In this document: positions 4,525 to 49,272 of the stretch, piece after piece
Layout of the letters: each line of letters begins with the position of its first letter
Numbering within the stretch: position 1 is the stretch's first letter
Sequence record: OQ718158.1
Length of the DNA stretch: 64,000 nt
Reading direction: 5' to 3' (one strand)
Made by a program: the position numbers and the translations under genes
The notes under the pieces: generated by a model
Told to the model about the DNA's origin: nothing
Databases searched by the model: none
The model's input: only the letters and a program-made list of their open reading frames with translations

Positions 4525-5253
4525 ATGATAGATAATATAAAATTTGCAACAGAAATGGCGAATCAACTCAATATAGCAAATTTTCAAATGTTAACATCTG
4601 TTATGGCTGAACATGCTGCTGCATATTCATCTAGTGGTATACAATGTGGACAAGCTAACATGTTAGCTGATGTTTATAGTGAAGTTCAAAGCAAACAATA
4701 TAGCGTGAAGACATACAAGGATAAGTTCGTAAGTCTTTATATGAATGAAGATATTTCAGAAGACCGCAAATTCACCGATTTTATTATTGAACGCCGTATT
4801 AGTGGGGTTTCAGACCCAAATGCAGAAAGTGATATTGTATTCGATGAGGTATTAAAAGATATATACGAAAATGAATTGAAAAGTAAGAATCATTACAATG
4901 TACGTGAAACTAACACAGTGCTAGTTGGATATGATGAAGACGAACAATATTTCTATTTTCGTATAACAGAAGTTCCATTTGAATATAAAAAACCAACCAC
5001 TACATCTGTAAAAGAATTCACTGAGAAGAGTAAAAACTTCAAGAAACACGAAGGAAACCGTTGTAGTATTAATGGTTATGATGAAAATGGTGTTCATGTT
5101 TATGAATGGGTTTCACCTAATTGCCAGACATACACCCGTTGCTTGAAGAAACGTTATAATTTAGAAGACAATGAATCCTTCTACTTTAAAGTTAAGAAAC
5201 AAGGTTATACTCGCCCTGAAGATTCAGAATTGATGGGTATGGTATATTTCTAA
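4525..5253 (+). CDS. hypothetical protein
   Basis: 242-aa ORF, AAGGA RBS. Confidence 0.75.
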   Translation: MIDNIKFATEMANQLNIANFQMLTSVMAEHAAAYSSSGIQCGQANMLADVYSEVQSKQYSVKTYKDKFVSLYMNEDISEDRKFTDFIIERRISGVSDPNAESDIVFDEVLKDIYENELKSKNHYNVRETNTVLVGYDEDEQYFYFRITEVPFEYKKPTTTSVKEFTEKSKNFKKHEGNRCSINGYDENGVHVYEWVSPNCQTYTRCLKKRYNLEDNESFYFKVKKQGYTRPEDSELMGMVYF

Positions 5254-5262
5254 GGAACTGTT

Positions 5263-5544
5263 ATGGATTTTTACCTACACACATGGTCATACGAACAATA
5301 CATTACATTATATCTTGAGATTATTAATACTGATCCCAGATATGGTTGTGATTTCGCTGATATTATAAAAGAGTATGCAGATGAGTTTGAGTTTGTATAT
5401 CTTGGTTCTGAACTATTTGTAAAGAGTGTAGGTAAAACCGGACGCATCACTGAAATTGATTATGATACTGTTAGTGTGAATTTCTATGTTGATTTTCCTT
5501 GTGATGGCGTTGATGGTGTATATTGTCTATATGAAATAATTTAA
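5263..5544 (+). CDS. small hypothetical protein (family A-like)
   Basis: RBS; YLGSELFV...GRITEIDY beta region. Confidence 0.7.
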   Translation: MDFYLHTWSYEQYITLYLEIINTDPRYGCDFADIIKEYADEFEFVYLGSELFVKSVGKTGRITEIDYDTVSVNFYVDFPCDGVDGVYCLYEII

Positions 5545-5550
5545 ATTTTA

Positions 5551-5575
5551 AGGCCAGCGTTTGCTGGTCTTTTTT
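5551..5575 (+). terminator. intrinsic terminator
   Basis: AGGCCAGC-gttt-GCTGGTCT + T-run. Confidence 0.8.
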
Positions 5576-5588
5576 CGCAGGTACAAAG

Positions 5589-5891
5589 ATGCTCAGTATA
5601 GATTTAATTAACAGTACTATAAAGTTGTTGGCTGATGTAGTAAAAGAATCCAATGGAACTTTATACCCATCAATGTATAAAATCTTTGAACGATACATCA
5701 AGGATTGTAATATATCCTTATATGGACTGGCAGTTGATATAGACGACCACTATGAAATTAATACTTCATATAAAACTGGAATGTTAATTGGTATTAATAT
5801 AAAGATGGGATATTTTCCTTATTACTGTATAGGATTACCAGATAGTACTATGGTAGATTATCCAGCCAGTATTATTAAACTAAGAGGATAA
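5589..5891 (+). CDS. hypothetical protein
   Basis: ORF in + strand gene run. Confidence 0.65.
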   Translation: MLSIDLINSTIKLLADVVKESNGTLYPSMYKIFERYIKDCNISLYGLAVDIDDHYEINTSYKTGMLIGINIKMGYFPYYCIGLPDSTMVDYPASIIKLRG

Positions 5892-5898
5892 AACTAAA

Positions 5899-6477
5899 AT
5901 GAATGTATTAGAATTATGTACTAAGCTGATTACTATGCGTAATGAGTGGTACGATTGGTTTTATAATGGTACTGATATGGATTTTTCAAAATATCCATTT
6001 ATGGAATCAGGATGTGATGCAAGATACCGCTGGTTGAGCAAAAGTGGTTCTGGTTTATTCATTCGAATTGATGATAGTGGTCAAGGAATTATAAAAGATT
6101 TAATTCGAGTTGAAGAACTCGTCCATGACAATTGGTGTGATAATGATCCATACCTTGGAAATATGATTTATGTAAGTAAAAATGATTGCATATTCGTTAT
6201 CCAGCGTCATGGTGATTCTATGTTTTATGTAGCAGACAACAGTACACCTGACGGTGCAGCAGCCAATGGACTTATGCCTAAGATTGATATATTGAAATTT
6301 GGATTACCTGAGCACTTCCAGATTAGTACTTTATACGATATTCCACCACTTGAGTTCTTTGAAGAATTTAAATTGTACTTCAATGATCTTCAAAAATTGA
6401 GTACTGATCGACGCATGGAAATAACTGTTAAGTACATGGACGGAACGAAATTAACCGATACGGGGATAGAATTTTGA
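5899..6477 (+). CDS. hypothetical protein (family B)
   Basis: GAGG RBS; PEHFQISTLYD motif. Confidence 0.75.
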   Translation: MNVLELCTKLITMRNEWYDWFYNGTDMDFSKYPFMESGCDARYRWLSKSGSGLFIRIDDSGQGIIKDLIRVEELVHDNWCDNDPYLGNMIYVSKNDCIFVIQRHGDSMFYVADNSTPDGAAANGLMPKIDILKFGLPEHFQISTLYDIPPLEFFEEFKLYFNDLQKLSTDRRMEITVKYMDGTKLTDTGIEF

Positions 6478-41409: not shown

Positions 41410-44139
41410 ATGTCATCCAAACGCATCATTGGTAGTGCTGCTATACTTGGAAATTTAGCAATTGGTGGAAAGTACGCTATGCGTACTTTTAATGGTACAG
41501 CACCAGACGCAAATACAGGTATTGTTGACTATCCAATTTATAAAAGATCAGAAGTTCAAAAAATACTTGATATGTTACCAATCTCCCGTATAGGGGAAAT
41601 GGATTATCTACCATTAAACGTTAATGGTTCATACGAAGGGGCAACGTCGCTTTCAGATGTATACCGTATGCAACCAACAATAGTCGAAGATGATGGTACT
41701 GGTGTGGTATTACGTGCTGGTACAAATGGTAGTACTGAAGGATATTACTATGCATTCATTCGTGATTTGCGTAATATTGATGCACTAACACAAAGTAGTG
41801 TTATCAGTACTACATCAAAATATCATCCTAGAATTCTTCCAAGTACTGAAAATGTTAAACAGTTTATCGGAACGAATGGTTATGAATTACTAGTTAGCCT
41901 ATCTAGTGCAAGTAATTATATTTTCACTTTAACAAATGGTACATTTAACGAAGTTGCACATATTCACGCTTCTATCGCTGCTACATCATTTGGTACAGAT
42001 AAACCATTGTATGCACATATCGTTAATGATAAAGTATTTGTGTGGTGCAAAGACACTACTATAGCAAACTATGGTTTGGCTTTAACATTATATACTGTTA
42101 ATACAAGTAGTATTAAAGATGGTACTATGAGTACTTTTGCTAAGGTTACTGGTTTTTCTGGTCAAACCTTAAGAAGTGTTAACTACACAAGTGCTAATAA
42201 TTTGAAAATTTATGAAAGATTATATTCAGTTGGAACTAGTAGTGATTCATTATTTGAATGCACTTCACCAGTTACACGAGTTGAATATTCAGATTATACA
42301 GATTATAATATACAAGCAAACGTAAGTCCAGATTTATCAAAGATTAGAATTACATTATTTCCAACTAACCGTTTAGTATCAAATCTATATATTAGTACTG
42401 TTTATGCTAGTGGTTTTAGTTTTGTTTATACTATCAACTCTAAATCATTATCAATTGATGGAAGTAGTAGAGCACCAATAGCAGCGGAATATAATGATGT
42501 TGATGGATTCACATTAACAAACCCATTTGCCATTGAGATGAACAACTTCATGGGTACACAGTTAGGTGTTCCGCAATTAGGTAACGTTGGTTCTATATGC
42601 CAAACCTATGACGGTTTAGTATTCAGTACTCGTGCTCGTTGGAGTTCTTCTGAAACCTATGGTATTCAGGTTTATAACGTAACAGGAACACCATATGATA
42701 GTTGGGTTGCCAGTACTCGCAAAGCGAACAATTCTAAATTTGTAAACGTTGCCCCAACATATGGTAGTGCAGTAGGTGAAAACCTTTTAGGAACACGTTT
42801 TATTGATAAACGTAAAGTACTGTTAGCATGTTCTGGAACATATGAAGATGAGTCATATGGTTATAACAATACAGTATTTTCTGAAATTGGCACTGATCCA
42901 ACCTTCCAGTTCAATTCAGTACAAAACAATACAACACTTAATGGTTTTGCACCACAAGCCAACCGAACTCGCCTCGGCGACAACTACAAATATACAGGTA
43001 TGATTTCATTAATTGATACTGACGGTTCAGTTAAATGTTATGGGACATCATTCATTGAAGGTGTATACAAAACAAGTGGTGGTTTGTTTAACCCAGATAC
43101 TTTAGAATTTGATGGTTCTTATACAATTGGTGATAATGTTCTGGAAACATTAAAACAAGAAATACTTGCTAATATTGGAATAGTAGGAGCATTTACTGGT
43201 AAAATTGCTTTATATTATGTACCAGATAGTTCTTTCTCAAAATCTATTGCGGTGGTTTCTGCATATAACTTAGGAAATAACCAAGGTTATGCAATATATT
43301 CTGAAGTTGATGTCACTGTTTCAGGAACCAATATTAGTTCTGCGTCTATGGTGAGTTCTAGATACGAAACACTTAATTCTGTAACAGGTATTGTAACCGA
43401 AGCCTATATGAAACGCTGTACTGGTCTAACTGTTGCTAAGTATTCTGGTTTTGGTTATATTGGTGTTGATGCAGTTCATCAGTTTTCACAACCTGGTAAT
43501 GCTCAATTCAAATTGATGATTGCTAAAACAGTGAATGGTTTGATTACATCTAACCGATTTATGTCATCCAGCTACATAGATAATGGCAATGCATTCCAGC
43601 ACGGAGTTATACCAGGTGTTGGATTTGGATACTATCATCTTCAAGATTCAGATTATCAAACTAAAGCAGTGTTTAGTCTCTTTGGGACAACATCAGCACA
43701 GATGGATGGGTTGATTGATGGTTCAGGAACTGTACAAGATAAAATCGTAGTAGTTTCACAAGATGTTGCTGAAGGTTTCACTGTGTACTTCACCCGTGAA
43801 GTTCCGGTATTCCTTGGTGGTATGTTTGATAGATTAGCGATTCAAACCATAGAATTAAGTACTATTAAAACTAACCCAGCTAACAGTACTTTTTATCTTT
43901 ACATTCAAATGAACCGTAACACAAGAAAAGCGGCATACGTTATCAGTACAACTCTTCTTGATGAGACATTGACAAACGTATATGTTGGTGATATTGTTAC
44001 TGGAAGTACGAGTATTACGTCAATTGATACTGAAAAGGTAACCCGATTCTTGACATACAGACCTAGTACGACCAAGCGTGGTTCTGCTATCCCAGCAAGT
44101 ACTGGTGTTCCTTCAAGCTCTGGTACACGTTGGCATTAA
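41410..44139 (+). CDS. large putative virion/tail-fibre-associated protein
   Basis: 909 aa; LPISRIG, EDDGTGVVLRAGTNGS, SAIPASTGVPSSSGTRW. Confidence 0.6.
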   Translation: MSSKRIIGSAAILGNLAIGGKYAMRTFNGTAPDANTGIVDYPIYKRSEVQKILDMLPISRIGEMDYLPLNVNGSYEGATSLSDVYRMQPTIVEDDGTGVVLRAGTNGSTEGYYYAFIRDLRNIDALTQSSVISTTSKYHPRILPSTENVKQFIGTNGYELLVSLSSASNYIFTLTNGTFNEVAHIHASIAATSFGTDKPLYAHIVNDKVFVWCKDTTIANYGLALTLYTVNTSSIKDGTMSTFAKVTGFSGQTLRSVNYTSANNLKIYERLYSVGTSSDSLFECTSPVTRVEYSDYTDYNIQANVSPDLSKIRITLFPTNRLVSNLYISTVYASGFSFVYTINSKSLSIDGSSRAPIAAEYNDVDGFTLTNPFAIEMNNFMGTQLGVPQLGNVGSICQTYDGLVFSTRARWSSSETYGIQVYNVTGTPYDSWVASTRKANNSKFVNVAPTYGSAVGENLLGTRFIDKRKVLLACSGTYEDESYGYNNTVFSEIGTDPTFQFNSVQNNTTLNGFAPQANRTRLGDNYKYTGMISLIDTDGSVKCYGTSFIEGVYKTSGGLFNPDTLEFDGSYTIGDNVLETLKQEILANIGIVGAFTGKIALYYVPDSSFSKSIAVVSAYNLGNNQGYAIYSEVDVTVSGTNISSASMVSSRYETLNSVTGIVTEAYMKRCTGLTVAKYSGFGYIGVDAVHQFSQPGNAQFKLMIAKTVNGLITSNRFMSSSYIDNGNAFQHGVIPGVGFGYYHLQDSDYQTKAVFSLFGTTSAQMDGLIDGSGTVQDKIVVVSQDVAEGFTVYFTREVPVFLGGMFDRLAIQTIELSTIKTNPANSTFYLYIQMNRNTRKAAYVISTTLLDETLTNVYVGDIVTGSTSITSIDTEKVTRFLTYRPSTTKRGSAIPASTGVPSSSGTRWH

Positions 44140-44146
44140 AAATTTT

Positions 44147-44175
44147 AAGCTCGTCTATTGACGGGCTTTTCTTTT
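44147..44175 (+). terminator. intrinsic terminator
   Basis: AAGCTCGTC-tatt-GACGGGCTT + TTCTTTT. Confidence 0.8.
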
Positions 44176-44209: not shown

Positions 44210-44776
44210 ATGGTCAAATCTTTACTACCACCACCAAAGCGTCACAAAATCCAAGAAATGAAAGACCAACGTACATTAAAGATGTACAACAATTTAGTTA
44301 AGTTACTGTGTAAAAGTCCATCGCTCAAAGCAGAGTTTAAAACTGATGATGACCGCAAAGCACTAATTGAGATGAAGTATATGCTCAGTAAAATGTCCTT
44401 TTACAAATTTGTAAAAGAATACGCATCTGACCCATTTAGTCCTCGTTGGAGAACCAAACCAAGAGAGTTTTTTTTCGGTGGTTCATATACTGATATCATT
44501 CAAGATACTGTGATAGGCGTAGAGTTCGAGATTGATTATGAGCCGAATGGTGTGGAAAACTTGCTGATTGAGAAACGTTTACCAAGTGAAGAAGAAATTT
44601 ATGTTTATGCAAGAAAACTTTCAACTTACAGTTCAAGAATTACTCTAGGCAAGTTAGATTCATTTATTATTTTCTATATACGTGTTGGCGTAGACAAAAT
44701 GGTAACTAAACTCAATGAACTTTCATTACAACAAAAACAGATTAATGCATACAAAGACATTACTGATTTATACTAA
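44210..44776 (+). CDS. hypothetical protein (triplet family C)
   Basis: DDDRKALIEMKYMLSK. Confidence 0.75.
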   Translation: MVKSLLPPPKRHKIQEMKDQRTLKMYNNLVKLLCKSPSLKAEFKTDDDRKALIEMKYMLSKMSFYKFVKEYASDPFSPRWRTKPREFFFGGSYTDIIQDTVIGVEFEIDYEPNGVENLLIEKRLPSEEEIYVYARKLSTYSSRITLGKLDSFIIFYIRVGVDKMVTKLNELSLQQKQINAYKDITDLY

Positions 44777-44782
44777 TGAGGA

Positions 44783-45304
44783 ATGAATATGTTTTTTGGC
44801 CCAGTTGGAAAACAAAACAGTACTTTAATTTGGCATGAAATTATCTTTAAAATTATATCAAAAAGTTTCACACTTAAAGATATCATCAATACAGATCAAG
44901 ATCGTCGTGTTCTGTTAGAAGCAAAATATAAATTGAGCAAACACCCTTTGCTACCATTAATCATTGATTACGTTAATGATTATGAATCCAGTCGTTGGAA
45001 GTTTGAAGAAGGCGGTTTATTTCGTGGAAAAACATTCTACGGTGCGGAACGATATGTATTCAGTGATGCAACAAATGGCGTTAAGTTTGCTATTAGAAAC
45101 TTTAACTCCAAAGAAAATGATTATCTTGAAAGTGGAGTGAAAGTATATATCGATAACAATAGCAATGTTCTAACATATGACGAATCACTAATTATGTTAC
45201 AAATAATGCGTGGCGTTGAAGGTGTAAGACACAATCTTACTAATTTGAAAATTCAGCAAAATGATATACATAATAGACAGAAAATTAAGGGTTTATATAA
45301 ATGA
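44783..45304 (+). CDS. hypothetical protein (triplet family C)
   Basis: DQDRRVLLEAKYKLSK. Confidence 0.75.
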   Translation: MNMFFGPVGKQNSTLIWHEIIFKIISKSFTLKDIINTDQDRRVLLEAKYKLSKHPLLPLIIDYVNDYESSRWKFEEGGLFRGKTFYGAERYVFSDATNGVKFAIRNFNSKENDYLESGVKVYIDNNSNVLTYDESLIMLQIMRGVEGVRHNLTNLKIQQNDIHNRQKIKGLYK

Positions 45305-45810
45305 TTTCATTTTTCAAAAAGAAAGAAAAAGTTGATGAAACTGGATTAGAATCGTTTCTATGGACTCTTATCATCAAAAAAAGTCCATTGATAAAAGAAT
45401 ATGCCATCAATGATACTAATAGAAAAACTATCATTGAATACAAATACGAATTAGCAAAATGTGATCCGATTGTTTACCACTTCGTAAAGTACTGTTCTGA
45501 AAATTTATCGGATATCACTATTGAACACGAGTCAGTACCAATGAGTTTTCCTTATGGAGATTGGGTATATACTTATGATATTTTTGATGGGTCTAACGGA
45601 TTCAGTTTTTATTTCACATCAAATAAAGCATATGTTCGAATCAAAACAGATATAGGTTGGGTATTGCATAGCACAAATAAAGAAGATTATAATTTATTAG
45701 CTGATGTATACAGAAGTGTTAAGAACTCAAAGGATATTGATGAAAGAATTAAAAAGCAAAATCGTATTTCTTTATCAATAGAAACATACAAGTCAAAGTA
45801 TGGTGGTTAA
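45301..45810 (+). CDS. hypothetical protein (triplet family C)
   Basis: DTNRKTIIEYKYELAK. Confidence 0.75.
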   Translation: MISFFKKKEKVDETGLESFLWTLIIKKSPLIKEYAINDTNRKTIIEYKYELAKCDPIVYHFVKYCSENLSDITIEHESVPMSFPYGDWVYTYDIFDGSNGFSFYFTSNKAYVRIKTDIGWVLHSTNKEDYNLLADVYRSVKNSKDIDERIKKQNRISLSIETYKSKYGG

Positions 45811-45812
45811 CT

Positions 45813-46214
45813 ATGACTACAGTTGATGATATCTACAGTACTATACGAAATATGAGTACAGATAGAAAAGTGTTTGGTGACAAAGAAAAGTCAAAATGTT
45901 ATGGCATCGATTCTTTTGATATTATTTCATACGAATATAATAACAACGGGACCAGTTCACTAAACATTGTGTGTCCACGAGATCCAGAAAATAATTTCAT
46001 GTACGTTGAAATTAACAATGATGGTATGTTCTTTACTAAAGTATATAAAGGTGGGAAAGAATACGAACCCATCGAAGTAATGAATGAAGAGAAATTCTTC
46101 CAAGAAGATACCATCATCAATCTTGGATTTAGTTACAATGACTATCAAGTACTGGATCATGATTTTAAACGATACTATAATGGTTTTCTAAAGGAGTTAA
46201 CGATTTACTTATGA
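45813..46214 (+). CDS. hypothetical protein (family B)
   Basis: MNEEKFFQ motif. Confidence 0.7.
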   Translation: MTTVDDIYSTIRNMSTDRKVFGDKEKSKCYGIDSFDIISYEYNNNGTSSLNIVCPRDPENNFMYVEINNDGMFFTKVYKGGKEYEPIEVMNEEKFFQEDTIINLGFSYNDYQVLDHDFKRYYNGFLKELTIYL

Positions 46215-47449
46215 AAAACAATTTTCTAGAACAAACTATTGTGAAACACTTAGCTGGTTCACAGGCGTATGGCACAAGCACACCAGAAAGTGATACCGAT
46301 TATCGTGGTATCTTCCTTGCAAACAAAGAATTTATCCTAACTCCTTTTTTTAATGTTAAGGAAGTTTCAGATCCTTCTGAAGAAGATACTAAATTTTATG
46401 AAGTCAATCAGTACTTAAGTCTGTATACTGAAGCTAACCCAAACATTCTTGAATCACTATGGGTTAAACCTGAACACATCGTAGAAAGTACTGAAATCTA
46501 TGACTATCTACGCTCATTCAATCAGCAATTATTGAGTTCAAAGATTGCACACTCATACAGTGGATATGCATACAATCAGGTTAAGCGTATGTCTAATCAC
46601 CACGGCTGGCTCGATAAGGAACGAATTGCTGAACGTAAACTAAATGAAATTTTAGAAGAACATCCAGTTGACGAAGTACTTTCATGGATGTATGATACAT
46701 TCCCGCAGTATTTGGTAGACCGTTTGAATAAATCCAATCTTCACCCATTCAATGCTACAAAAATTGATTTTGAAAAATACATGCGTGATACTTCATTACA
46801 ATTAGTTTCAACACAAGCATTGAAACAATATCATTTTGTACGTTTAGTACATAATTATAGTACTGATAAAGTATTAGATCGTGATTTCAATTTATTGAAT
46901 TACAATTCAGGGTATGAACTAATCCATTACGGTGAAAACATCTTTGGGGTAATTATCAACCCGAATGAAAGTACAGTGAATGCTGATGGTTCACTACGTT
47001 ACTTCAACAAAGAACGTACTACAGAAGAATTGAAAGTTCGTCCTGAACTCATTGTAAAATTCAATGAAAAGGAATACAAAGAAAATAGTGAGAACCGTAA
47101 GAGTTATCACAAATGGAAGCAGAATCGTAATGCCAAACGTGCTATTCTTGAATCACACCACGGTTATGACTGCAAACATGCTATGCATACAATCAGGCTG
47201 CTGAATACAGCACAGGAAGCACTTGAAACTGGTATCATCCAAGTTCACCGACCGGATGCTGCTATGTTGATGGACATTCGTAACGGGAAGTGGTTGTATC
47301 AAGAAGTTATGGATTATTTCAACGAAAAGGTTGACTACATCCGAAATGTGGCGTATCATAAGACCCATCTACCGAAGCGACCAAACATAAAGTTGGCTAC
47401 GAAGGTACTATTAGATATCCGTGAAATGCAATGGTACAGTAAAAAATAA
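46211..47449 (+). CDS. Pol-beta-family nucleotidyltransferase (RlaP-like)
   Basis: GSQAYGTSTPESDTDYRG, NPNILE, GYD.KHAMH..RLL. Confidence 0.85.
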   Translation: MKNNFLEQTIVKHLAGSQAYGTSTPESDTDYRGIFLANKEFILTPFFNVKEVSDPSEEDTKFYEVNQYLSLYTEANPNILESLWVKPEHIVESTEIYDYLRSFNQQLLSSKIAHSYSGYAYNQVKRMSNHHGWLDKERIAERKLNEILEEHPVDEVLSWMYDTFPQYLVDRLNKSNLHPFNATKIDFEKYMRDTSLQLVSTQALKQYHFVRLVHNYSTDKVLDRDFNLLNYNSGYELIHYGENIFGVIINPNESTVNADGSLRYFNKERTTEELKVRPELIVKFNEKEYKENSENRKSYHKWKQNRNAKRAILESHHGYDCKHAMHTIRLLNTAQEALETGIIQVHRPDAAMLMDIRNGKWLYQEVMDYFNEKVDYIRNVAYHKTHLPKRPNIKLATKVLLDIREMQWYSKK

Positions 47450-47459
47450 GAGGATTGTT

Positions 47460-47876
47460 ATGCTAAACGAACAAATCAAAGACGCACTACGTGTACTGAA
47501 TCGCGAAGTTAACCGCATCCAGAAAAGTACTGATCGTTATAAACTAATGCATGAACTTAGACTTTCGTTGGAAGCTATCAATAATGGCGAATGGTATCTT
47601 GAACCAGAATATCGCACACGTGAACTAACTGACGTTGAAAAAGCAATTGTCAAATTCATTACAAGTCGCGACAAAAATGCATCCGAAAAAGATGTATCAA
47701 TGAACTTCCATCTTACTAAATGTGAAGTCGTGGAAAAATTTAAATTCGATTGGCTTGACTGGATTGAAATGATCATGGAACTTGAAGAAGAATTCAAAGT
47801 TGAAGTTGATTTGGAATACGAGAATGAAAACACTAAACTGTATAAACTCGTAGATCATATTCAAAAAATGTTGTAA
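47460..47876 (+). CDS. acyl-carrier-protein-like protein lacking the phosphopantetheine Ser
   Basis: FDWLDWIEMIMELEEEFKVEV aligns with ACP [25 protein letters not shown] RBS, ATG 47460. Confidence 0.75.
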   Translation: MLNEQIKDALRVLNREVNRIQKSTDRYKLMHELRLSLEAINNGEWYLEPEYRTRELTDVEKAIVKFITSRDKNASEKDVSMNFHLTKCEVVEKFKFDWLDWIEMIMELEEEFKVEVDLEYENENTKLYKLVDHIQKML

Positions 47877-47929: not shown

Positions 47930-48304
47930 ATGAGTGTACTAGAAATTATTGTTTCAAAAGTTTTAATACCATATTGGAAACCAATTTTGGTAGTAGGAGT
48001 AATGGCAGGTTGTGTTTACGGTGGATGGTCAGCAAATACTTATTATACTGGTTATAAAGAAAGTATTGACCAAAAAATAGAAAAGAAAGTTGATTCTGCA
48101 CTCGCTAAGATGCAGCAAGAAAATGCAAAAAACTATATAGAAACCAAAAAGATAATGCAAGATAATGCTAAAGTTATCGAGACACAAGTGCCTATTATAG
48201 TAGAAAGAGAAGTTTACAAAAATGTATGTCTAGATGAAGATGGCGTTAAACTTCTGAATGAACTTAAACAGAATTCCCTTGCAGCGAGGAATAAATTCAA
48301 ATGA
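47930..48304 (+). CDS. i-spanin (Rz-like)
   Basis: N-terminal TM, coiled coil, VEREVYKNVCLD tail. Confidence 0.8.
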   Translation: MSVLEIIVSKVLIPYWKPILVVGVMAGCVYGGWSANTYYTGYKESIDQKIEKKVDSALAKMQQENAKNYIETKKIMQDNAKVIETQVPIIVEREVYKNVCLDEDGVKLLNELKQNSLAARNKFK

Positions 48305-48615
48305 AATACGCTTTAGTATTTGCAATTTCTTTTCTATTAATTAGTGGTTGTGCTGAAGAAATTAAGTATCAACCTAAACCAATTGTAGAACAAGAAATCT
48401 TACTTGAACGTTGTGACGAAAATACACCACTACCAAGTAAAATCATGGTCGATAAAAACGGGTTCAGAGGATATGATGGTGCTGAAATTCTTGCAGTACT
48501 CGTAAAATGGGATGCAATGTACAATGACTGTGCACTAAAACATGATGCATTAATTAAAACTATTCGTGATTTACAAAATCAAGATGTTAAGGTTAAAATT
48601 AAATCCGAGGATTAA
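48301..48615 (+). CDS. o-spanin (Rz1-like lipoprotein)
   Basis: Lipobox LISGC; LLERC...LP, YNDCALKHDAL. Confidence 0.8.
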   Translation: MKYALVFAISFLLISGCAEEIKYQPKPIVEQEILLERCDENTPLPSKIMVDKNGFRGYDGAEILAVLVKWDAMYNDCALKHDALIKTIRDLQNQDVKVKIKSED

Positions 48616-48617
48616 AA

Positions 48618-49229
48618 ATGTCAAAATATCAGGTCTACTATGTTGCCAAACTATCACTTCTTGATGAGTTAAATCAAAGAAGTACACAGATGAAACGCTA
48701 TACATATAACGGTGTTACTTTCCGATACTTCCCACAAAAAGTACTTACATTCGTTAAGAATTGTAAATGCGTTGCGTGTGGTATTGAAGCTACTGAAGTT
48801 CGCATTGAGCGTTCACATAGCACTGATCCGGTATATGGTAAACCTCACTTAAATGTCTATGCAGTTTGTGGTCTATATGAAGTACTGATGACAGTAGATC
48901 ATAACCAACTAGCATCTAAGGGTGGACCTGATTTAGAGTCAAATTACAACACAATGTGTTCACGTTGTAACAGTCTTCGTTCTAATAAAACTGAATCAGT
49001 AGGTGAATTCCTGGAAAAAGTTAAGGGTAGAAATCTACTGGAAGAGCATATGAATGATTTTTTCAATAAAGATAAGAAGAAATCTAAAACTCCTACTCCA
49101 GAAGAATTGGAAGAACGCCGTTTACGTACAGAACTATGGGAAACCGACCATATATGGCATGTTCGTGATTTTGGACGACATATGAAAGCTCTAAAAAAAG
49201 AACAAAAGAAATTGAATAATCACAATTAA
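48618..49229 (+). CDS. HNH endonuclease
   Basis: CVACG; TVDH...SKGG.D...N...MCSRCN..R.N. Confidence 0.82.
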   Translation: MSKYQVYYVAKLSLLDELNQRSTQMKRYTYNGVTFRYFPQKVLTFVKNCKCVACGIEATEVRIERSHSTDPVYGKPHLNVYAVCGLYEVLMTVDHNQLASKGGPDLESNYNTMCSRCNSLRSNKTESVGEFLEKVKGRNLLEEHMNDFFNKDKKKSKTPTPEELEERRLRTELWETDHIWHVRDFGRHMKALKKEQKKLNNHN

Positions 49230-49239
49230 TATGTTATGA

Positions 49240-49272
49240 TAGGGACTTGAGAAATCGAGTCCCTATTTTTTT
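49240..49272 (+). terminator. intrinsic terminator
   Basis: TAGGGACTTGA-gaaa-TCGAGTCCCTA + T-run. Confidence 0.88.

Follow-up and report, generated by a model that had tools for sequence, protein, structure and literature searches.

What does an acyl carrier protein (ACP) become when the serine that carries its phosphopantetheine group is lost? The question is raised by EcMJ_242, a 138-residue, ACP-like protein encoded in a stretch of 64,000 nucleotides from sequence record OQ718158.1 (hereafter, the window), in which a Trp residue occupies the position of this serine. The explanation favored here, which we hold with about as much confidence as doubt, is that EcMJ_242 is a derived, non-carrier protein of the ACP fold, which acts by protein binding through an acidic docking helix and an N-terminal hairpin. 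What began as a single residue in a single phage also turns out to be part of a coordinated loss of carrier features that extends through a whole clade.

An acyl carrier protein fold without its serine

The window derives from the Escherichia jumbo phage vB_Ec-M-J (OQ718158.1; 378.6 kb; genus Asteriusvirus), to which the 1666-base stretch comprising EcMJ_242 and the gene upstream of it is 100% identical, and the same stretch is found in eight further jumbo coliphages at 97-99% identity. In the record itself, the two genes are named ‘nucleotidyltransferase’ (EcMJ_241) and ‘acyl carrier protein’ (EcMJ_242). The features of the latter are as follows.

47460-47876, plus strand: serine-less ACP-like protein EcMJ_242 (phrog_18343), 138 residues (open reading frame (ORF), PHROG, profile and fold model)
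47460-47624, plus strand: N-terminal helical hairpin, residues 1-55, with the turn motif [ST]-x-[DE]-R-Y at S23-Y27 (AlphaFold2 helices)
47631-47873, plus strand: ACP-fold domain, residues 58-138, net charge about -8 (profile and structural superposition)
47751-47753, plus strand: codon 98, TGG (Trp), at the phosphopantetheine serine position, hypervariable in the clade (codon reading and alignment)
47760-47762, plus strand: codon 101, TGG (Trp), invariant (18/18) in the Ser-variable clade
47817-47831, plus strand: Y120, E121 and N124, equivalent to Escherichia coli ACP residues 58, 59 and 62 (ungapped HMMER alignment and column counts)

As a single sequence, EcMJ_242 scores 13.2 bits against the Pfam PP-binding family (PF00550), which is under the cut-off of 20.8 bits. 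A profile of 11 family members, compared with the sequences of the PDB, matches the ACP of Bacillus subtilis (E = 5e-7) and then some 60 other ACPs, in an alignment that is free of gaps over the DSLD motif and helices II-IV and in which W98 falls on Ser 36; the homology to ACPs spans residues 58-136 of EcMJ_242. Among the PHROG families, EcMJ_242 matches its own, phrog_18343, over residues 2-138 of 138 (E = 3.2e-43), as well as phrog_5934, an ‘acyl carrier protein’ family (E = 3.6e-8).

The AlphaFold2 model (predicted local distance difference test (pLDDT) 86, predicted template modeling score (pTM) 0.65) comprises two helices (residues 2-19 and 25-41) followed by a four-helix domain, which superposes on essentially the whole of solved ACPs (Z 8-10, root-mean-square deviation 2.1-2.6 Å over 73-79 residues), with VIA-align Z scores of up to 10.0 and Foldseek template modeling scores, normalized by target, of 0.70-0.78. 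An earlier note on this DNA had described an ACP-like C-terminal domain with Trp for the DSL serine and a helical extension of about 55 residues, had made an ACP-like fold a condition of its reading, and had inferred that the protein is non-modifiable, all of which is borne out by the profile match, the superposition and the TGG codon. The hairpin formed by residues 1-55 has no match in Pfam. Its turn motif, in which R26 and Y27 are nearly invariant (20 sequences), is present in the Ser-bearing and the Ser-less clades alike.

EcMJ_242 thus has the four-helix fold of an ACP and significant sequence similarity to ACPs; three attributes of a functional carrier are lacking, namely the D-S-L serine, hydrophobic residues at the pocket positions, and modifying or acyl-handling enzymes of the phage's own. 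In fact, no pantetheinyl transferase (PF01648), adenylating enzyme (PF00501), ketosynthase (PF00109) or second PF00550 protein was found in up to six Rak2-like genomes, and the host enzymes, which do exist, are unable to use a Trp. Judged by its sequence, EcMJ_242 is a real ACP homologue in which phosphopantetheinylation at the canonical site is impossible. An observation that touches on this gene only through annotation is that the BFVD entry A0A2Z5HFQ2, a viral protein of 432 residues, is 98% identical to EcMJ_242 over 137 aligned columns, and probably represents an ORF that was mis-called or fused when a close relative was annotated.

The former serine site in relatives

By tblastn, the gene is found in 45 phage records, which comprise Asteriusvirus phages of E. 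coli and Salmonella and Alcyoneusvirus phages of Klebsiella, and protein searches bring in additional, metagenomic relatives; a profile scan of IMG/VR (one alignment) for further relatives found nothing. The counts given for the Ser-variable clade refer to 18 distinct sequences from Asteriusvirus, Alcyoneusvirus (RaK2) and metagenomes. In these, site 98 is occupied by eight residue types (five Ser, three each of Trp, Thr and Asp, and one each of Asn, Arg, Glu and Lys), making it the third most variable of the 138 positions. Trp is found in vB_Ec-M-J, 121Q and SD-2_S15, Ser in A4 and UE-S1 (codon TCA), Thr in RaK2 and Muenster, and Asn in Turkey5, with Thr, Arg, Glu, Asp and Lys among the residues of the metagenomic members. 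Even close pairs disagree at this site, as illustrated by EcMJ_242 (Trp) and its relative P0007 (Thr), which are 80% identical, and by Turkey5 (Asn) and P0013 (Arg).

Conservation of the Trp residue, a check proposed in the earlier note, therefore has a divided outcome, with Trp present in many Asteriusvirus genomes but eight residue types at the site in the clade as a whole. Similarly, the Trp is neither a private mutation nor an error, being common and found in a gene under purifying selection, but the serine is retained in A4 and UE-S1. The further proposal that Trp 98 itself mimics a loaded acyl group, or the pantetheine, could draw on the occurrence of Trp in both the window's clade and that of 121Q and SD-2. 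It does not survive the finding that close relatives carry Thr (P0007), Ser, as in A4 and UE-S1, or Asn, Arg, Glu, Asp or Lys in this third most variable column, and we give it hardly any credence. Since the site is hypervariable, no particular side chain is required there, and Trp 98 was for the same reason dropped as a functional novelty. The variability itself may reflect a simple release from constraint or an arms race.

The surroundings of site 98 are fixed, with D97 in 18/18 sequences, D100 in 17/18 and W101 in 18/18. Helix II is likewise kept, residue 103 being always Glu or Asp, with E109 in 16/18 and F112 in 17/18. The orthologues appear in GenBank as ‘acyl carrier protein’, ‘acpP’, ‘D-alanyl carrier protein 1’, ‘carrier domain-containing protein’ or ‘hypothetical protein’; for variants with Trp, Thr or Asn, those names that denote a carrier are probably incorrect. 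The present analysis thereby corrects a database annotation, given that the proteins named ‘acyl carrier protein’, ‘acpP’ and ‘D-alanyl carrier protein’ mostly cannot be carriers.

A sister clade with the serine, and coupled substitutions

Proteins of the same architecture (134-141 residues) are encoded by Cronobacter phage GAP32, Xanthomonas phage XbC2 (Mimasvirus), Serratia phage BF, Yersinia phage fHe-Yen9-04 and Erwinia Eneladusvirus phages, and in a maximum-likelihood tree the family divides into two clades with 100/99 support. Within the Mimasvirus/Eneladusvirus clade, the D-S-L-D motif is present in 7/7 sequences, Trp at the +3 position in 0/7, and hydrophobic residues at both 121 and 124 in 7/7. 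In the Asteriusvirus/Alcyoneusvirus clade, in addition to the invariant W101, position 120 is aromatic (eight Tyr and eight Phe, with two Leu), position 121 is Glu in 15/18 sequences, and position 124 is Asp, Glu or Asn in 15/18. Bacterial ACPs, which served as the outgroup, have DSLD in 14/14 cases, mostly hydrophobic residues at 121 and 124, and Trp at position 101 in 1/14; because all 14 have DSLD, the Ser-less state is derived.

By the ungapped alignment, positions 101, 121 and 124 are equivalent to residues 39, 59 and 62 of E. coli ACP, which we take, from crystal structures of acyl-ACPs, to line or border the acyl-chain pocket. These substitutions suggest that one lineage lost the cofactor and the cargo pocket together.

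The Ser-bearing proteins (GAP32_159, BF_0158, fHe-Yen9-04 g153 and XbC2_157) resemble EcMJ_242 in length, in the hairpin motif [ST]x[DE]RY and in genomic location, between an RlaP-type nucleotidyltransferase (NTase) on one side and the i-spanin, o-spanin and DUF7325 genes on the other. They differ from it in having kept DSLD (7/7), in the absence of Trp at +3, and in the two hydrophobic pocket positions, and among the family members scanned the sister clade gives PP-binding matches down to E = 1e-9. The Mimasvirus/Eneladusvirus proteins are probably real carriers.

A comparison with the host protein AcpP leads in the same two directions. The four-helix fold and the acidic helix II (D-x-[IVL]-E-x-[IV]-M-x-L-E-E-x-F) are common to AcpP and EcMJ_242, and the equivalents of AcpP residues D35, D38, E41, E47 and F50 are retained in the Ser-variable clade. 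Most members of this clade, unlike AcpP, are without the pantetheine serine, and they have a fixed Trp at the position of residue 39 and charged residues in place of residues 59 and 62; EcMJ_242, moreover, has the additional N-terminal hairpin of 55 residues and scores below the Pfam gathering threshold. The family offers an unusually clean evolutionary contrast, in which sister clades of one architecture differ in the presence of the serine and of a hydrophobic pocket, and which shows the residues to swap.

Selection after loss of the serine

Within Asteriusvirus, Nei-Gojobori estimates of the ratio of nonsynonymous to synonymous substitution rates (dN/dS) for the gene are 0.16-0.28. For vB_Ec-M-J and 121Q, both of which have Trp at site 98, the ratio is 0.18 at a dS of about 0.9, and this low value for a Trp-bearing pair indicates that constraint went on after the serine had been lost. 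None of the 45 phage records, and none of the contigs, has a disrupted reading frame, and the ACP core has a net charge of -7 to -16 in 25/25 members of the family.

These data bear on the possibility that the protein is a true carrier where the serine is present and a decaying, dispensable gene elsewhere, so that the variable site records neutral loss. Ser is, after all, the commonest residue at site 98 (5/18), being kept in A4, UE-S1 and P0017, and the sister clade, with its PP-binding matches, is plausibly one of real ACPs. Such decay is difficult to reconcile with a dN/dS of about 0.2 between Ser-less genomes at a dS of 0.9, with the uniformly intact frame, and with the lack of phage enzymes able to load or use a carrier. 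Furthermore, W101, Y/F120 and E121 are fixed in Ser-bearing and Ser-less members of the clade alike, from which it follows that the functional shift predates, and is independent of, the identity of residue 98. Neutral loss is consequently regarded as improbable.

Relative to its neighbors, the protein has evolved fast. Its identity to the RaK2 orthologue is 30%, compared with 71% for the NTase, 59% for the i-spanin, 50% for the o-spanin and 49% for the HNH endonuclease, as expected of an interface protein.

A proposed mode of action

The favored scheme, in which EcMJ_242 binds but does not carry, would have its origin in a jumbo-phage ACP with an N-terminal hairpin, a form that still has an intact DSLD motif in Mimasvirus and Eneladusvirus. 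In the ancestor of Asteriusvirus and Alcyoneusvirus, four changes would have taken place jointly: loss of the requirement for the serine, fixation of W101, fixation of an aromatic residue at position 120, and acquisition of the charged residues E121 and D/E/N124. Together these would close or re-pack the acyl pocket and leave a fold that is stable without a prosthetic group. We infer the closure of the pocket from the aligned residues.

The acidic helix II is the surface by which every ACP docks on its client enzymes. This helix, together with the N-terminal hairpin, would be what selection has retained in a protein that is presumably cytoplasmic, acidic and devoid of any cargo, and whose mode of action would be pure protein binding through the ACP docking face. 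Binding through helix II, like any host target, is something that we infer. Within this scheme, the version preferred is that the protein is possibly a look-alike, which takes the place of ACP on a host protein but has no acyl group to deliver. The decoy role suggested in the earlier note is compatible with the pattern of conservation. ACP is among the most connected of bacterial proteins, and a phage protein that keeps its docking face but not the cofactor would lend itself to probing the processes that depend on ACP, and possibly to inhibiting them. An interaction-prediction paper from 2026 has an unspecified phage ACP predicted to bind the host FabZ (PMC13291599).

Several points weigh against the proposed scheme. 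No binding partner has been found, and the conservation of helix II, D97 and D100 could be purely structural, arising from helix capping and from the fold core. The closure of the pocket rests on an alignment and on a list of pocket residues taken from the literature, and the members with Ser at site 98 (A4, UE-S1, P0008-P0011 and P0017) might still be modified by the host AcpS. Identity to the host AcpP is about 26-31%, which is no higher than that to the Bacillus ACP, and there is therefore no signal of host-specific mimicry. Finally, in the Asteriusvirus phage phAPEC6, whose virion proteome comprises 62 proteins, the ACP-like gp313c is absent although the adjacent fibre protein gp314c is included (PMC7247149), an absence that says nothing about intracellular expression.

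A serine-less ACP domain on RIIB of Aeromonas phage CC2

A second ACP-like module without the serine is found at the N-terminus of the RIIB protein of Aeromonas phage CC2, which matches the PP-binding family with 21.6-25 bits, has the motif L-D-D-L-D, and shows a weak match to phrog_18343 (E = 1e-3). Like EcMJ_242, this domain is an ACP-fold module in which the serine is replaced and the acidic helix II is retained. It is unlike EcMJ_242 in being fused rather than free-standing, in having no Trp at +3, and in its other pocket substitutions, and because these substitutions differ from the Rak2-like ones, the loss of the serine is independent. In the CC2 rIIB gene (L025 2731-3924), the serine-less domain is followed by a helix-turn-helix match (HTH_23, 25 bits, residues 106-142), which precedes the RIIB core.

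Together with EcMJ_242 and its relatives, the RIIB-fused domain suggests a recurrent phage strategy that is so far undescribed; in the literature searched, no paper on serine-less phage ACPs was found. A bolder form of the argument holds that large phages have repeatedly made cofactor-free ACP decoys, represented by the Rak2-like family and by the CC2-type RIIB fusion, that the Rak2-like version plugs the docking site of a host hub or defence protein, such as SpoT, MukB or an enzyme of lipid A or fatty-acid synthesis, and that site 98 records an arms race at the edge of this interface. We regard this as unlikely, though worth stating.

The fusion might also be read as a Rosetta-stone link between the ACP-like protein and RIIB. 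This link was rejected. Real as the fusion in CC2 is, searches with phrog_609, phrog_612, phrog_3803 and the C-terminus of CC2 RIIB detected neither RIIA nor RIIB in vB_Ec-M-J, 121Q, GAP32 or BF, and the fusion is therefore an analogy and does not identify a partner. The corresponding search in RaK2 gave one weak match, which contains stop codons.

The upstream nucleotidyltransferase

The gene immediately upstream of EcMJ_242 encodes an NTase, and the two are separated by a short spacer.

46211-47449, plus strand: RlaP-family NTase of the Pol-beta superfamily, 412 residues (PF10127 E = 4e-16, 59.8 bits, cut-off 23; phrog_388 E = 5e-75)
47450-47459, plus strand: spacer of 10 nt, with a GAGG Shine-Dalgarno sequence at 47450-47453 (direct sequence reading)

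The RlaP-type assignment made in the earlier note is confirmed by the Pfam score and by an intact catalytic motif, G16-S17...D28-x-D30, which is invariant in 24 homologues; identity is 71% to RaK2 ORF005 and 57% to GAP32_154. The ACP-like gene begins, as also noted earlier, 11 nt after the last base of the NTase stop codon (47449), with its ATG 6 nt past the GAGG sequence.

This arrangement had prompted the suggestion that the ACP-like protein is a substrate or partner of the NTase. In its support, 10 nt separate the genes in the window, they adjoin directly in one metagenomic relative, and all of the Rak2-like phages examined have both of them in one conserved block. Direct adjacency is, however, restricted to the window's subgroup and that one metagenomic relative, while in most genera the two genes are split, either by two tail-fibre genes (121Q, A4 and Turkey5) or by three to four small ORFs (RaK2, GAP32 and BF). 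The NTase family is also far more widespread, with at least 565 proteins, than the ACP-like family, which has about 13 clusters in the same database and about 15 further full-length representatives. In addition, position 98 holds no conserved residue that could be modified.

A case of a different kind is provided by a 78-kb metagenomic Rak2-like contig (L011), in which the NTase ORF (4763-6004) begins at the equivalent of residue 127, so that the catalytic N-terminal 126 residues are absent, while the ACP-like gene beside it is intact. About 380 bases without a long ORF lie upstream of this NTase, which could be a pseudogene or the product of an assembly error. When the NTase and the ACP-like protein were modeled as a complex, the prediction scored 0.02, a value that is not readable as evidence either way. 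On balance, a partnership of the two proteins appears very improbable, and this part of the earlier note is not upheld.

Genomic context and a possible structural role

Downstream of EcMJ_242, the following features are found.

47930-48304, plus strand: i-spanin, Rz-like (phrog_1152 E = 1e-27)
48301-48615, plus strand: o-spanin, a lipoprotein, Rz1-like (phrog_2425; weak Pfam LysC match; o-spanin annotation in Muenster and XbC2)
48618-49229, plus strand: HNH endonuclease (PF01844; phrog_23285)
49238-49267, plus strand: terminator-like hairpin, possible end of a transcription unit (consensus scan only)

The gene order in every Rak2-like genome or contig examined is RlaP NTase, up to four small ORFs or a tail-fibre pair, ACP-like gene, i-spanin, o-spanin and DUF7325, with an HNH endonuclease after the o-spanin in some genomes, and the i-spanin directly follows the ACP-like gene in 14/14 contexts. 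Given that the phages are related and broadly collinear, this synteny says little in favor of a functional link.

The neighborhood nonetheless invites the view that the protein does not mimic the host ACP but serves, as an accessory or structural subunit, in an assembly encoded by the phage, which may act late, around lysis or virion completion. ACPs are found as subunits in respiratory complex I, NFS1-ISD11, MukBEF and MmpL5. Solved ACP-containing complexes of this kind (complex I/LYR, NFS1-ISD11-ACP, MukBEF-AcpP and MmpL5-AcpM) are among the structural matches of EcMJ_242, and they use the ACP fold as a binding module, as is proposed for EcMJ_242. In those complexes the ACP is in the holo or acylated form, and the acyl-pantetheine contributes to the LYR interface; EcMJ_242, by contrast, cannot hold a prosthetic group.

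Evidence for such a subunit includes the location of the gene, which always immediately precedes the i-spanin and o-spanin genes and has tail-fibre and DUF7325 structural genes nearby. The N-terminal hairpin, which is conserved, could be an attachment element. The Ser-bearing Eneladusvirus orthologue has, in addition, been detected by liquid chromatography-tandem mass spectrometry (LC-MS/MS) in virion preparations of three phages, in a study that also remarked on the spanin neighborhood (PMC7760394). The spectral counts there were low (3-5), however, and may reflect contamination, and the ACP-like protein is missing from the 62 virion proteins of phAPEC6 that include its fibre neighbor. Spanins are, moreover, periplasmic, whereas the ACP-like protein has no signal sequence, and, since all of the contexts belong to a single phage lineage whose gene order is conserved globally, the synteny is not independent evidence. 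A role as an assembly subunit is the main alternative but is considered rather unlikely, and a non-carrier protein that binds through the ACP docking face is the preferred reading.

A second terminator-like hairpin lies upstream, at 44147-44168, and the two hairpins might bracket one transcription unit, although the number of such sites is no higher than in shuffled sequence. Public RNA runs offered low-depth metatranscriptome contigs only, with 0 reads on the stretch in the sole raw-read run, and in a search of protein-atlas features all scores were under 0.9, which gave no lead.

The remaining observations concern variable elements of the region. The HNH gene is found at the 3' side of the o-spanin in Asteriusvirus and Alcyoneusvirus but not at that place in GAP32, BF or XbC2, a distribution that fits a mobile insertion, as expected. 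Upstream of the NTase, at 44210-45810, are three tandem paralogous small genes (188, 173 and 169 residues; phrog_18641 twice and phrog_7868) followed by a gene for a 133-residue protein (phrog_22376), which match RaK2 ORF001-003. In RaK2, GAP32 and BF, the interval from the NTase to the ACP-like gene holds a second set of paralogues (phrog_10375 in two to three copies, with phrog_21561), which is missing from the window. The phrog_21561 gene of this set, which encodes 188 residues and overlaps the start of the ACP-like gene in these three phages, was considered as an obligate partner and rejected, as a search of three Asteriusvirus genomes (vB_Ec-M-J, 121Q and Turkey5) did not find it. In the window phage, a large tail-fibre gene (41410-44139) precedes the paralogue block, while 121Q, A4, Turkey5 and SD-2 have a fibre pair between the NTase and the ACP-like gene (L001 1613-4925), the position of the fibre cassette thus varying within one genus.

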